A stretch of 64,000 nucleotides of DNA from Pocillopora damicornis (GCF_003704095.1 NW_020845843.1:1-64000); one strand, 5' to 3'. Numbered from the stretch's first letter, positions 15,237 to 34,500 are shown. The notes: generated by a model from the sequence alone, not told the origin. Program-made: numbers and translations.

Positions 15237-18200
15237 TCACCACACAGAGCACTTCTGTCTCGGGTTCATTTCCTTTCCTTTTTTGCAGCTGTAAGCGTCT
15301 GCAAACGTTTTGAAGTTGGATAGTGGACCAATTACCCTGTTGACAAGAGTACAATTTTTGAACGAGCTTCATATGAATTGGTAGTTTGGAAAATATTTGG
15401 ACCATCCCCTAGTCAAGTCATCTAAGCCCGAAAATTTCGCCTTGAAACAGTTTTTCTTGAAAACTCTGATCTCAAAATGCTGTCTGACTATTGGACAAGA
15501 GGCAAAATTTAGGGAAGAAATTTCGGCGCACGCGGTTTAAGGAAAATCTTTTATCACAATAGGAGGCAAACGAGGCTGATGATCTATTTAGAAACAAAAA
15601 AGGCTGTAACAACTGTGTTTTCATGTCTTAACCCACTACATAACTATCATACAGACTTATTGGTGATTATATCTATTTTTCCCGGCTATCTAAGACTGGC
15701 GCGTCAGAATTGGCCTGATAAATAGGAGAACTGATTACAATTTACCTGTACTTTGGAAACGAGTGTACGTCAGACTCCACTTGGAAAAGAGCTGCTTCTT
15801 TCTTGTATACGCTACACCAAGGCTAAAGTGAAAAGTATAGAGAGGGTAATTCATCGATGAAGATCGAGAGGTAAACTATCTTTTATTTTCTTAAGATCTC
15901 GTCCTTAAGAGGATAAAAGCAAAGGGAGTTAAGTACGAATTAAAAGAAAATTAGCCACACCATTCTATTTGAACCAGTCTCCTCTTGCACCACTTTTTTC
16001 GCGTCGCACTAACCAAACTATAGCACGTGTTGAGGGTTAAACAGAGTGCTCGCTCGTAAAGAAACTGAGACGATTTGCAGCTTTTCATATGCACACAGTA
16101 CAACGAACAAGGAATATCCCAGCCCTTTCTTGAAAAAGTGGCCTGTTAAAATGTTTCATTCTTTAAATTCCAGAGCCGAGGTTAGTTGTGTTTCCTTTGA
16201 GTTGTCGTTGGCCTCTTGTGATTATTTCAGTTTCACAACAAGACAATCGAGAACTATTTACCGTAGCAAATCCTATGAAAAACAGTTGATCCACACTCAA
16301 ACCCAAGTCAGGCAGTTGTCCTTCTTTTTTATTGTCTTTAACCCACGACTCATATGCCTGGGAATAAAATGAAATAAGATGTCTGAGTTTCGCAATGCAC
16401 TAAAAAGTAAAAACTGTTTTAAATACAACTTAAAAATACAACCGTTGAGAGAGAGGGAAGGTTATCACTGACGTTTGTATAAAAAATTAAGACATAAACC
16501 CGACTAATGAGCTAGCTAACTAATTATGTTATCTTAAAAAATCGTGTAGGTAGTAACCACATGGTACCAATGAAGTGCGACCCTGCGAAAGTAAGCCCTT
16601 GTCTGGAAAAAACGTTTACCGCCAATGGGAATTTAACTTACGTTCTCTTACATCACTTACATGACGAACTGTATTGTCCGCTGATGATGCATACTGCATG
16701 TTTACCACAAGCCTTCAGTACAGACGTTCTAAAGTTCGTCAGGCAATCACTCGTTCCTACGTGGAGGAGGAATGATAACGTGACGGGCCTAGGAACGTAA
16801 GCACTTGAGGCTAGCGCAGTACAGGCATAAAGAAAAAACAAGGATACACACACAAAAAAAGAACAAACAAGCAAACAGTTTGTGTGAAGCGTACATCATA
16901 AGCAAGCTTTATTCCACCATTGTCAGCAATGTTCTCATTCAAAGTCTGTTTACCATCTATCTGTAAAAAAAAATTTAAAACAAAACGATTTTAACATTTG
17001 ACTTTATGATAACAGTATCTCCATTTCTATTTTAGCATTTCTACTACGTTTATTTTTAACAAAGGAAACTAAAATGTTTAAATGCTTGGTTATCCCCCAC
17101 ATAATGCGTTTTTCCCCTTTTTTAACAGTCTTTCGGCTTCTGTGAGGAGTAAATGTACTACAGTAACCACACTAAGTTGGTTTCTCTAACTTTCTGGGAA
17201 GTCTACCAATCAACTAAGCAAATAAAAGAGAACAAGGTCAGGTCTTATTTGGAGTAAATCCCTTTTTCAAGAACCTGAAAATATGTATTATTCAATTTGA
17301 AAGAATCTGGCCGAGGATTCAATTCGGTAGGAATTCAAAATGATAACTCTAAAAAACCTTTTGACATATGAATGGCAACGCGCAGGTAAAGGAGGCGAAT
17401 CATATTCATATTCTTGGTGTTCACATAGACAGCAAGCTTTCCTTCACATTACTAAATCACTTTCCTTTCCATATCACTAAGAAATGTGGATTTTTATTTA
17501 GCCAGATTTAATAGTGTATATTACGAGAAACATTCTTTAAGGTACTTTAGGCCATATATATGGTCGAGATTGAACAGCAAAATCAAGGACAAACCTTCCT
17601 TACAATCCCTCAAGTCCAACATACCGGATATTCATCTTGCATATCTTATAAGTGACAATTGAGGCTCCTGTCTTATTTGTAGTTCTTGAGAATTTTAAGA
17701 AATATCTTTAGCACTTTCTGTATATTTTAGTGGGGATAACTCCGTAATTTTTAACATTTAAATTTTATTTTTTATAAATTTTAGATTTGAGTGATAAACT
17801 CATTTTACAATTGAATTATTTTGTTGTCCCCTATTAGCTTTTTAAGCTAGAGACATGGACACTTAGATAAAGTGTTATGTTCAAAAACCACATATCAGCC
17901 ACGCGACCTTGATGCCAAAATTGGAGCTCTAAGAAGTCTAAAAGAGTTGGTGCTAACTGATATTGCACTTATGCTGTACACGGCTTATTTACTATCACAC
18001 TTTGAATACTGCCGTCCACTTCCATCAGAGATTGTAAGACTTTGATCCTTAAACTCGACTCAGCTAACTGCTACACGATAAAAGCCCTCCTAAACTTAGA
18101 TAACAGCTAAGATTATGATTCTATATTATACGTTGCTAATATATATTCTCCAGAGTAAAGAAGGTACGATCAATCTCTCATCTAATTCTTAAGATGTATA

Positions 18201-21200
18201 AAGGAAAATGTGTCTGATTACATCTCTAATCTTTTCGAGCTGGTAAGATCCGTTATAATTTAAGGACTAGTGGTAATAATCTTGTTCAACCCATCTATCA
18301 TTATAGGTATTATAATAACTCATTTACTCACTAGATATCGGATTTGTGGAATCACCTTCCGTCACATATTTAGCAATCAGCAAACTTGAGTGACTTTCGC
18401 AAGAAGTCGAGGACATTTTTTAATTCGAACTTTAAGGTCAACTGCAAATGTAACTACTTTTTATCTCAGATATGTTAAATTGTTTAAGACTGATATTATA
18501 ACAAGTATTTTTTTAAGTTTCGTTTTTTTTCTTTTATTTTATGCTTTTTTTTTCTTTTGCTAACTGTAATGAGTCCTAAACATAAGCTTCGGGATCGAAT
18601 TCACAGGAAAACCTGATCTCACGCAGTAACATTTATAACTTGATTGATTGATTCCTAAATTTTTAACTGTAGCTGAATTTCTGTTGAATCTGACTTACAT
18701 ATGTCCCAAACACGTCATAGTTGTTGTACTGATTCACCAAACATTCGGCTTTGCTTTCAAAACTGTAAGTCGAAGACAATGACCACCAATTTTTCACGTT
18801 GCCATTCTTATCATAAAGCCGCCCTGTGGAGGAACAAAGAAATCAATCAAAACAGTCCTCAAACTTCCGCATCGATGTCAGTGTGGGCGACTCTGCGTAC
18901 CTACCCCTTCCCCATCCAGCATTACCCCAAATTGCAATCAGTTTAACGTTGTTGGGGAGGGGTAGGTGAGAAGCTGCTCAGATACTGACATTGACCCAAA
19001 CTTACTAAGCAACTTGGTTATGTCCTGATTTCCATCTTCGATCCAGCGCTATCTTGTTCATACAAGACTCTTCCTACCTATGCAAGTATTTGATATGTAA
19101 AGCTTGATTCCTCTTTCGTTGAAGTAATTTATCTCTTTTTGTTTTGATACTGTTACCAGTGTTATTGTTACTGTTGTTTCTACCTTGGCTGTCAAATCCA
19201 TGGGTGATCTCATGTCCAATGACCATTGCTAATGACCCGTAATCAATATACCTGCAAAAAATACGTCTCTAAACGCTTAGACAAGCTACATAATTTCTGA
19301 GGCATACTTTTTTTTAAGAATATAAAATATTCCCCTTATTGTGTCTCATATAATGCATGACTTGCAAATAAAAGATTATTCTATTCTGCGGACATTTATT
19401 GCAGCTAGAATAATGTCTTCACCAGTAAAAAATGCAGCTCGCCTGAGACGCTTTTCTCATTATTCATTGACAGTTCATTTACTCTAAAAAAACTGGAGCG
19501 TTCGATCTTTCGGAACATAAGCCTAAATATATTATTAGCTGCTTACTTTGGGTAATTCTTTCTGTAAAATGGAGATTGTAGAATTCCAGCCAAAAACACT
19601 ACGAAGAAAAAACAAAAAAACGATTAATTATCTTGAGATCCTAAGTCCTTGTTATGTAATATCTCACGGTGGAGACCAGTCCATCAAAAGAGTGAGGGTC
19701 TACTTCCAGCTAAAACGCGAGTGGTGCTCTGTGTTATGATCCAGTTATTAATAACCAATTAGACCTTACACTGAGATTGCAAAGGTCTGGCCACTTTTCT
19801 AGCTACTCGGCTTGAAAAAGGGTTAAAGGGATTTGCACTTGCGAGTGGAAAGAAATTCGGAATTGAATTGGTTCTGCTTCACTATGCTCTATTATTGGTC
19901 CAGAAAATTCGCACCACCTCAACCAATTAAAATCAAAACTGGAGTTATCAGGACTTTGTCATTCGCGTTTTACCGCGCTTCAGGTAGTTTGCTTGTTTCT
20001 ACTTTGAGTTCTATAATATTTTTAAGACACCTCATCGAAAATCGCTCTAAGGGTAACTCACCTATCCGGTTTTGCTGTGGACTGTAATATCCATTTACTT
20101 GTGCAGGACTTTGCATCCACCTGGAGAGAGAGCGGAAAAGGGTGAGTAACCGAGGCAGGGAGTTAAAGAACATACAGTTGCGCTCTCCTGACCATCTGCG
20201 ACTTTTCACGCTACTTACATGAACCACCTCAGTAAAAAAACTTTATCTAATACGTGTTTTCAACAGTGAGAGGTAAGCTTTGTGGACTGTGCTAAAACTA
20301 ACAATTTTCAAAGAAATTTACAATCAAAACCTGATTCCTAAGCATTCCTGGACAATTCAAATATTTATAAGCTAAGCAGTCATACTGTTAAGAACGTGGG
20401 CTCCGTTACACTTACATGTCCTTGTCGACTGGTTTTCCAAGAAGATCAAAATTCTTTTGTACGACCATATACTTCATTGACACGGTGTTTTCAAAATAAT
20501 CATCTCCTGCATCCAGCTAAATATTTGGCAAAAAATATATCTATTTTAGTAAACAGCACACCAGTGCCCAGACTAGTGCCCAGTGTTATTCCAACGCTAC
20601 ACGCAAGTACAACCAGAAATGATTTTCCCACATTTGTGCCTCTGAGGAATTTCGTCGAAAGTAATCCAGCAATTCAATAAATTTGTCCATCTGTGCGCTG
20701 TGATAAATTCCTTCTTTGACTAACATTGATTTATTATCGTGATCTTGTTCAAGACATTATTAACTCCAACCAGCTCTTTTCAGTACTCACCAGTGAGTAC
20801 TGCTCGTCGAGTTTTTTGTCGTCTTTGATGAAAGGGGGGTAGCCGATGTCCTCTTGGATTGCTTTCGCCTTCGATAAAGAAATATAAAAAGTACATTTAG
20901 AGGGAGAGTTTCAAGTTTATGAGTTCGTTCGGCGAAGCTGCTTCAATTTAATAGTTTCAAGAGCCATCAAAAGTACGAGCTGGTGATTCTCGTGGAAAGT
21001 TTACCCAAGCAAAAACTTCGTTGCATGGTAAAAAACAATCTATTTAACAGAGCGCGCAAATAATACGTACAGCTTTCTTATCTGTCAGTGTTCAAATCGT
21101 ATGGCTAACAATCACGTTAGAAAATTTTGGGTAAAATTTTGAGTAAAATTTGATATTAAGTACGTAAGCATACCTTTCCTTTAGCCGATTGTTTTGTACT

Positions 21201-34283: not shown

Positions 34284-34500
34284 CTGCGGACGGGTTCTCA
34301 ATTGGCGCCTTTTTTGTTCCTTTCGACGTAAATCGAAGGATGATGACACCAACAATGATACCGATGACCAAAAGTACCACTAGGGCTATGATCAACCCAC
34401 GAGTCGTTCCACATTTACGAAACCGATATTTCACTCTGGGGTTGTCTTCATTAAGCATTTCAATAGTGTCATCTGCGACTGCCCTGTTCATTCGAAACAT
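34284..34500 (-). CDS. Cytoplasmic tail + signal-anchor TM exon paralogous to exon 1 of the M13 peptidase (phase-1 donor)
   Basis: MFRMNRAVADDTIEMLNEDNPRVKYRFRKCGTTRGLIIALVVLLVIGIIVGVIILRFTSKGTKKAPIENPSA|gtttgt aligns with (LFR)MGRMGNPVSDDRVELVDDNVGIGYRLRKCGKTRLVIIAVVVAVLVIGGIV. Confidence 0.8.

Follow-up and report, generated by a model that had tools for sequence, protein, structure and literature searches.

The stretch of DNA analysed here, hereafter the window, comprises 64,000 nt of a Pocillopora damicornis scaffold (GCF_003704095.1, NW_020845843.1:1-64000), and all coordinates are positions within it. It carries a locus for an M13 metallopeptidase resembling endothelin-converting enzyme (ECE), in which two homologous first exons, each encoding a predicted membrane anchor, lie upstream of one set of catalytic exons, and a tandem array of thrombospondin type 1 (TSP1) exons lies between the two anchors. 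All genes of the locus are on the minus strand. Assembled RNA splices the last intact TSP1 exon either to a terminal exon of its own or to the second exon of the peptidase, and this fork is the subject of what follows.

The peptidase unit is described by a 20-exon minus-strand model from 28015 to 15237 that reproduces XP_027047280.1 exactly (endothelin-converting enzyme 1-like, 751 aa). Its own first exon, the proximal exon (27844..28318), comprises a 5' untranslated region (UTR) from 28318, an ATG at 28015 and a transmembrane (TM) helix; the coding part (28015-27844) measures 172 nt, ends in phase 1 and closes on the donor CGA|GTAAGT. An RNA contig from a further run (L013) extends the 5' UTR at least to 28318 and contains proximal exon 1 and exons 2-20, with intron 2 retained. 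Exon 2 (26266..26310; 45 nt, phase 1-1, PLICKTEECYKISK) is the acceptor for both upstream units, and exons 3-20 (14928..25882) encode the ECE-like M13 peptidase proper, with a coding sequence that ends at 15237 (…KCSVW*) and a 3' UTR that reaches at least to 14928. Pfam finds both domains of the family, above the curated cutoff and from end to end, in the protein of this model (P0192; M13_N 1-381/381, 290 bits; M13 1-205/205, 217 bits). The catalytic motifs HEITH, ENIADNGG and VNGYYSP are present, as is the C-terminal CSVW, and the best solved relative is ECE-1 (3DWB, E 1.1e-137, residues 65-751), with neprilysin at E ~3e-125. Judged by its complete domains, its motifs and its nearest structure, the predicted enzyme is a full member of the M13 family. 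Relative to P. verrucosa, its exons differ at 29/2256 positions (1.29%) and its introns at 250/11341 (2.20%; p = 0.004); the gene is intact and under purifying selection.

The second anchor-encoding exon, the distal exon (34284..34500; 217 nt), has an ATG, a cytoplasmic tail of ~35 aa and a TM helix (GLIIALVVLLVIGIIVGVIIL), ends in phase 1 and closes on the donor CAG|GTTTGT. The original prediction took it for a homolog of the proximal exon, and the two indeed share 54-55% amino acid identity (E 2.5e-8). A search of the 234-Mb P. damicornis assembly (4393 contigs) for further copies of the locus's exons found no other significant copy of the TM exon. Both start with ATG and encode a short acidic/basic tail, a YR.RKCG.TR motif and a hydrophobic helix before a GT donor; as far as can be read from sequence, the basic RKCG motif is followed by a hydrophobic stretch of 20-23 residues.

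In protein searches, exons were queried singly, and public proteins (P0025, P0191-P0193) served in place of joined models. When the distal exon was compared, without a profile, with 1.84 billion representatives, only short unspliced open reading frames (ORFs) were returned and long spliced proteins were absent. In word searches, neither the distal exon nor XP_027047284.1 matched spliced RNA-derived ORFs of the distal unit, the length window of the latter, 128-aa query being one that would exclude a 238-aa product. One database ORF of the distal exon (P0002) bears C-to-T-like changes throughout (R->W/C, T->I, P->L/F, A->V), which are probably an artefact of bisulfite-treated read assembly and no true variant.

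The interval between the two TM exons holds a micro-exon (X), four TSP1 units, an internal terminal exon and a fragment of a long interspersed nuclear element (LINE) that contains an assembly gap. Micro-exon X (33654..33683; 30 nt, EEPQSNKTSQ, phase 1-1, donor AGG|GTAAGT), which had previously been missed, separates the distal exon from the TSP1 array and is contained in both public models of the distal unit. Two TSP1 exons had been recognized earlier; both are intact and phase 1-1, and the count is revised to four units, each 595-835 bp long, in tandem. Exon A (32909..33085) carries an in-frame TAA (32948-32946) and an extra Cys, and is the last coding exon of the 128-aa RefSeq model. Exons B (32074..32250; Pfam TSP_1 E 1e-11) and C (31410..31586; E 1.5e-12) are the two intact ones, each of 177 nt; both encode canonical thrombospondin repeats (TSRs) with six Cys, WxxW (WGNW) and CSVSCG, and their units are 95-98% alike, introns included. 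In bits, Pfam TSP_1 scores 39.9 for A, 45.2 for B and 47.9 for C (cutoff 21.6). Unit D (30815..30925, approximate limits) is a remnant that has kept its 3' half only and has lost its acceptor; it shows no Pfam TSP_1 match and no splice junction in the RNA contigs of 26260-32259. A search for the donor locus of this cassette found no further copies of X or of the TSP1 units in the P. damicornis genome. The array is followed by the alternative terminal exon (29219..30176), with a strong acceptor (ccccag|TTC), a 37-aa tail, a stop at 30063-30061 and a 3' UTR that enters the LINE. The intron between X and exon A also contains a dispersed repeat of ~320 bp (33215..33533, no strand assigned), copies of which, 79-91% identical, occur on at least 8 other contigs.

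The RNA evidence consists of assembled contigs from three RNA runs of three studies (X1, X5 and X6), aligned to 26260-32259, a stretch that stops short of TSP1-A, X and the distal exon. A further run of unrecorded type, aligned beside them, behaves like DNA. Contigs of this kind show which junctions exist, and not abundance, transcript starts or strand. In addition, 18 RNA runs from coral studies contain 19-37% of the words sampled from 31300-34600.

In X1, X5 and X6, proximal exon 1 is spliced to exon 2, the loose end at 27843 being the reverse complement of the exon-2 letters; L013 contains the same junction. Within the array, the predicted splice from B to C (32074->31586) is found as a GT..AG joint in X5, with matching loose ends in X1. 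A direct splice from the distal exon to B (34284->32250) had also been predicted and is seen in none of the three runs: what stands upstream of B (in X1) and of C (in X5 and X6) is instead the last 28-30 nt of micro-exon X (33654->32250 and 33654->31586).

TSP1-C is the point at which splicing branches. In X1, it is joined to position 30176 with GT..AG ends (31410->30176), and the contigs, which cover 29219-30164, continue to 29219. The original prediction had found no convincing terminal exon for a stand-alone TM-TSP1 gene; this joint overturns that statement, as the stand-alone unit possesses a terminal exon, used in RNA, with a stop after 37 codons and a 3' UTR. In X6, exon C is joined to peptidase exon 2 (31410->26310), precisely as forecast. 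The contig concerned consists of 29 nt of X, the whole of TSP1-C and the first 30 nt of exon 2; the first exon-2 base is aligned at 31409, with 29 loose letters after it, and the canonical exon borders are exact. It carries the run's own exon-2 G allele, which also appears in the X6 contig that joins proximal exon 1 to exon 2. A TSP1-peptidase isoform does exist at the RNA level, and C is the one exon of the distal unit seen joined to the common exon 2. Alternative promoters and a new chimeric gene had been offered as alternatives to one another; at the RNA level both appear to be true.

The anticipated agreement of phase among the distal exon, the TSP1 exons and exon 2 is borne out, and every combination of exons without A remains open to its normal stop. 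The computed frames encode 179 aa for TM-X-C-tail, 238 aa for TM-X-B-C-tail, 835 aa for TM-X-C-peptidase and 894 aa for TM-X-B-C-peptidase; any combination that includes A stops at codon 129. A phase match alone is weak evidence, because 1-1 exons are usual for extracellular modules.

Public annotations of this genome conflict at the locus: RefSeq splits it into two genes, and the original GenBank annotation fuses them into a protein of 916 aa. The RefSeq model of the distal unit, XP_027047284.1 ("mucin-like protein", 128 aa), joins the distal exon to X and to TSP1-A up to the TAA, so that it ends at a lineage-specific nonsense codon. The fused GenBank model, RMX43307.1 (P0191), runs from the distal exon, with an upstream coding extension, through X and part of TSP1-C to the proximal TM exon and the whole peptidase, and Pfam reports TSP_1, M13_N and M13 on it. 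It is probably wrong in detail, having two membrane anchors and a join inside C. It nevertheless means that public databases already hold a TSP_1 + M13 architecture for this locus. The junction from the distal exon to X is present in both models. A P. meandrina protein, CAH3160571.1 (P0190), likewise has two membrane anchors and reads through the LINE ORF between the TM exons; it and RMX43307.1 look like mis-annotations of this complex locus.

Related genomes place the two first exons in a wider context. In P. verrucosa, RefSeq isoform X1 (767 aa) joins a distal-type TM exon directly to exon 2 (...ENPSSG|PLICKTEEC), and isoform X2 (751 aa) begins with the proximal exon. The earlier proposal of two promoters thus finds support in the annotation of two first exons on one exon 2 in P. 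verrucosa; in P. damicornis, the distal unit's link to exon 2 is seen in run X6 only. Synteny makes the P. verrucosa exon the positional ortholog of the window's distal exon, strongly diverged from it: 27/217 nt differ (12.4%) and the proteins are 64-68% identical, compared with flanking DNA that is ~97.5% identical and peptidase introns that are 2.2% divergent. A third TM paralog of the isoform-X1 type was also considered and is absent from the window, from L008 (a 767-kb long-read contig, 99.6-99.7% identical to the window; its gap-equivalent stretch is masked) and from the rest of the genome. Because of this synteny, the exon of isoform X1 is no hidden third paralog.

The P. verrucosa locus, read on a chromosome assembly (L015), contains no TSP1 exon and no X, and has kept one copy of the intron part of the array unit. 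Either the cassette would have been lost in P. verrucosa, or it would have been gained and then amplified in the P. damicornis-type lineage. The P. meandrina database model begins with the P. verrucosa-type exon, and the cassette, present in the P. damicornis type, is by that gene model absent there as well. The divergent block as a whole, reaching from the distal promoter region through the distal exon to the end of the array, measures 5.6 kb in the window (36150-30500) and 1.9 kb in L015 (9474-11375). An old haplotype, fast evolution or gene conversion are possible causes of its divergence.

Between lineages that carry it, the array itself varies. In the Tara Pacific Pocillopora scaffolds that were examined, the distal exon is of the window type (96-97% aa), and four contigs (L016-L019) have three intact TSP1 exons, no truncated fourth unit and a Tyr in place of the stop in A; the protein of such an intact TSP1-A has index entries in 77 blocks of the collection. 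The 37-aa tail exon is 100% conserved at the amino acid level in the same four contigs. The stop in TSP1-A is common to L008-L011, and window-like contigs have two intact exons and a truncated fourth unit beside it; one of these contigs, L011, appears to have one TSP1 unit fewer. Some contigs have identical B and C exons, a sign of gene conversion.

On balance, we consider it somewhat probable that the window holds one complex ECE-like M13 locus with alternative anchor-encoding first exons and a species-variable TSP1 cassette, the distal unit of which can either end early or reach exon 2. The distal (34.5 kb) and proximal (28.0 kb) first exons would each encode their own cytoplasmic tail and type II anchor. 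From the proximal promoter, the product would be the plain 751-aa enzyme. Distal transcripts that end at the internal terminal exon would encode a small type II TM protein with one or two TSP1 repeats and the 37-aa tail (179-238 aa), and those that skip it and splice to the shared exon 2 would place one or two TSP1 repeats between the anchor and the catalytic domain (835 or 894 aa). The two public gene models suggest that the distal ATG exon is joined to X in the same molecules, in which case one molecule would start at the distal ATG, pass through X and C and continue into the peptidase. Such a long isoform may be translated and active, and its TSP1 repeats may hold the enzyme at ligands in the matrix or on the cell surface, or direct it to them.

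Several observations weigh against this reading. The splice from C to exon 2 comes from one short contig in one of the three RNA runs, and low-level read-through splicing between neighboring genes is common. The TSP1 exons of X1 run to the internal terminal exon, RefSeq models the distal and peptidase units as separate genes, and the join of the distal ATG exon to X is known from public models and not from RNA contigs. In the window lineage, A has a stop, at which transcripts that include it would end (codon 129), and D is truncated, both of which are signs of decay. The distal-unit exons differ from the Tara lineage at 11-14/717 positions (1.5-2.0%), as much as their surroundings do (65-69/~4050, 1.6-1.7%), and of the codon differences between B and C four are non-synonymous and one is synonymous. 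Furthermore, TSP_1 was found on none of 120 representatives of the best M13 clusters, and the architecture is therefore not conserved across corals.

The same evidence can be read as two genes: a young stand-alone TM-TSP1 gene, its anchor copied from the peptidase, beside an ordinary ECE-like gene, with C-to-exon-2 splicing as occasional read-through or conjoined splicing and a TSP1-peptidase protein of no importance. The use in X1 of a terminal exon with its own stop and 3' UTR, the conservation of the tail exon, the separate RefSeq models and the single X6 contig all fit this account. It accords less well with X6 itself, where contig depth over the terminal-exon region is very low and the link between C and exon 2 is nevertheless present. 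The orthologous distal exon, moreover, is annotated in P. verrucosa as a true first exon of the peptidase, so that splicing from the distal promoter to exon 2 would seem to be the older condition and not noise. Taken together, we regard two separate genes as possible, though less than probable. The locus as one unit with alternative first exons can be carried a step further, to a TSP1-bearing peptidase that is a regulated, translated isoform, its stalk tethering it to matrix, glycosaminoglycan or scavenger-receptor-type ligands, with exon shuffling in progress between sister species, by means of symmetric 1-1 exons within a phase-1 intron of a protease gene; this stronger form we hold to be rather doubtful.

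A further explanation is that the distal unit is a decaying partial duplicate, transcribed and without a selected product, short or long. The TAA and extra Cys of A, the truncation of D, the missing TSP1 exons at the P. verrucosa locus, the equal divergence of exons and introns and the 4:1 ratio between B and C are what such decay would leave. The distal-unit coding sequence gives no positive signal of selection in a comparison whose ~11 substitutions make the test weak and very low in power. Set against decay, a distal-type exon with an open frame and an intact donor is found in P. verrucosa, P. meandrina and many Tara Pocillopora contigs; three TSP1 exons are intact in L016-L019; all of the six Cys, WxxW and CSVSCG are preserved in B and C; and the depth of the X1 RNA contigs is comparable to that of the peptidase's own first exon. 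We consider decay without a product unlikely.

The soundness of the assembly bears on every reading that places the distal unit upstream of the peptidase. The LINE fragment (28434..29600, minus strand, outer limits estimated) consists of pieces of a reverse-transcriptase ORF and contains the N gap 28972-29071; it has the same orientation as the genes, and a weak RVT_1 match lies on the 5' side of the gap. As had been proposed, the gap lies inside a colinear LINE and the scaffolding is correct. Its flanks (29072 and 28971) map colinearly, without a change of strand and at a distance of 620 nt, in L008, in a Tara Pacific metagenome scaffold (L019) and in L015; because three independent assemblies agree in this, the scaffold join is sound. 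The true gap is thus ~620 nt rather than 100, within the LINE. In L019, a continuous RVT_1 ORF of 497 aa is called across the equivalent stretch; together with the 620-nt spacing, this excludes the second peptidase copy that might have been hidden in the gap. No reading frame depends on the gap, because it is non-coding, with the TSP1 terminal exon on one side of it and the proximal exon on the other. L008 is colinear with the window from 36.5 kb to 24.8 kb at 99.6-99.7% and has the same four TSP1 units, and the array is therefore no assembly collapse. A mis-scaffolded array or gap join, with the distal unit not truly upstream, could draw on the N gap within a repeat and on tandem units 95-98% alike, a type often collapsed by short reads, but the RNA junction joins C to exon 2 and three independent assemblies would need an identical error, so that an artefact is, for all practical purposes, excluded.

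In the favored reading, of one locus with two anchor-encoding first exons, the ECE-type gene has alternative N-termini, which is an arrangement of a known kind. The human ECE-1 isoforms a-d have alternative first exons, separate promoters and differing N-termini. The present locus resembles ECE-1 and neprilysin in its predicted type II zinc ectopeptidase and its complete M13_N and M13 domains, and ECE-1 also in its proposed alternative N-termini; it differs from ECE-1 in that each alternative first exon encodes its own TM helix as well as a tail, and in that one of them precedes cassette TSP1 exons and an internal terminal exon. A second parallel is human EEF1AKMT4-ECE2, a name that also occurs among the M13 cluster matches; it is a read-through fusion in which exons of an upstream gene are spliced onto ECE-type common exons beside the plain enzyme. 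The present locus would yield an N-terminally extended fusion in the same way, but the upstream unit is an unrelated methyltransferase there, and here it consists of a paralogous anchor exon and extracellular TSP1 modules. The protocadherin and UGT1A clusters, too, have tandem paralogous first exons (two here, three in the more distant coral described below), probably with promoters of their own, and shared downstream exons; unlike them, the present locus has very few variable exons, one of which has gained cassette exons and its own terminator and can act as a separate gene. What sets the locus apart is thus a TM helix for each first exon, TSP1 modules that can be spliced into the stalk, an upstream unit that can terminate itself and a cassette that varies among close relatives.

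The M13 ectopeptidases neprilysin, ECE and PHEX are textbook examples of an anchor, a short stalk and a catalytic domain. We know of no described M13 enzyme with TSP1 repeats in its stalk, and a literature search found no paper on the combination of TSP1 and M13. Canonical TSR modules on a zinc metalloprotease are familiar from ADAMTS and cnidarian astacin-TSR proteins; the catalytic family is an M12 metzincin there and an M13 gluzincin here, and the TSRs, which form a C-terminal ancillary region there, would here stand on the N-terminal side, separating the membrane from the catalytic domain. In a seven-species anthozoan survey, the partners given for TSRs are ADAMTS, astacin, trypsin, VWA, ShK and Ig, and M13 has 0 occurrences (PMC5446238). 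If the TSP1-bearing isoform proves true, adhesion modules in an M13 stalk would give the family an architecture new to it and would suggest that a reef-building coral processes peptides locally, at the matrix or at cell surfaces. In cnidarians, symbiont uptake has been linked to proteins with TSP1 repeats (PMC5446238).

The locus also lines up, among closely related species, the steps proposed for exon shuffling: duplication of an anchor, phase-compatible modules, tandem amplification, a nonsense mutation in one copy, the gain of an internal terminator and the retention of splicing to the old acceptor. This process is testable here with ordinary RNA and population data. A comparable arrangement occurs in a more distant coral (L012, ENA ERZ25067556; exon 3 79% identical), where three tandem TM exons (1272, 9992 and 15704) are accompanied, within 1272-18604, by an exon-2-like piece (4628-4662) and a TSP1 exon (6775-6939), all upstream of M13 exons 2/3. 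Arrays of anchor exons with a TSP1 exon are therefore not confined to Pocillopora. In a transcript-derived protein of a matching species (P0072), the first exon resembles the middle TM exon most, and the nearest one would then be skipped in this transcript.

Finally, a few minor features were observed in and around the peptidase gene. Intron 2 (25883-26265) is retained in several RNA-derived contigs and ORFs, namely L013 and L014 as well as P0014, P0069 and P0203. Beyond the locus, the window contains a second N gap at 9953-10052. Within intron 1, contigs of X1 and X6 carry an insertion of 37-38 nt at 27728 relative to the reference, and the same offset is found in L015 (14713/14751); it looks like a lineage polymorphism. 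Contigs of X6 show additional small indels at 26644-26935.

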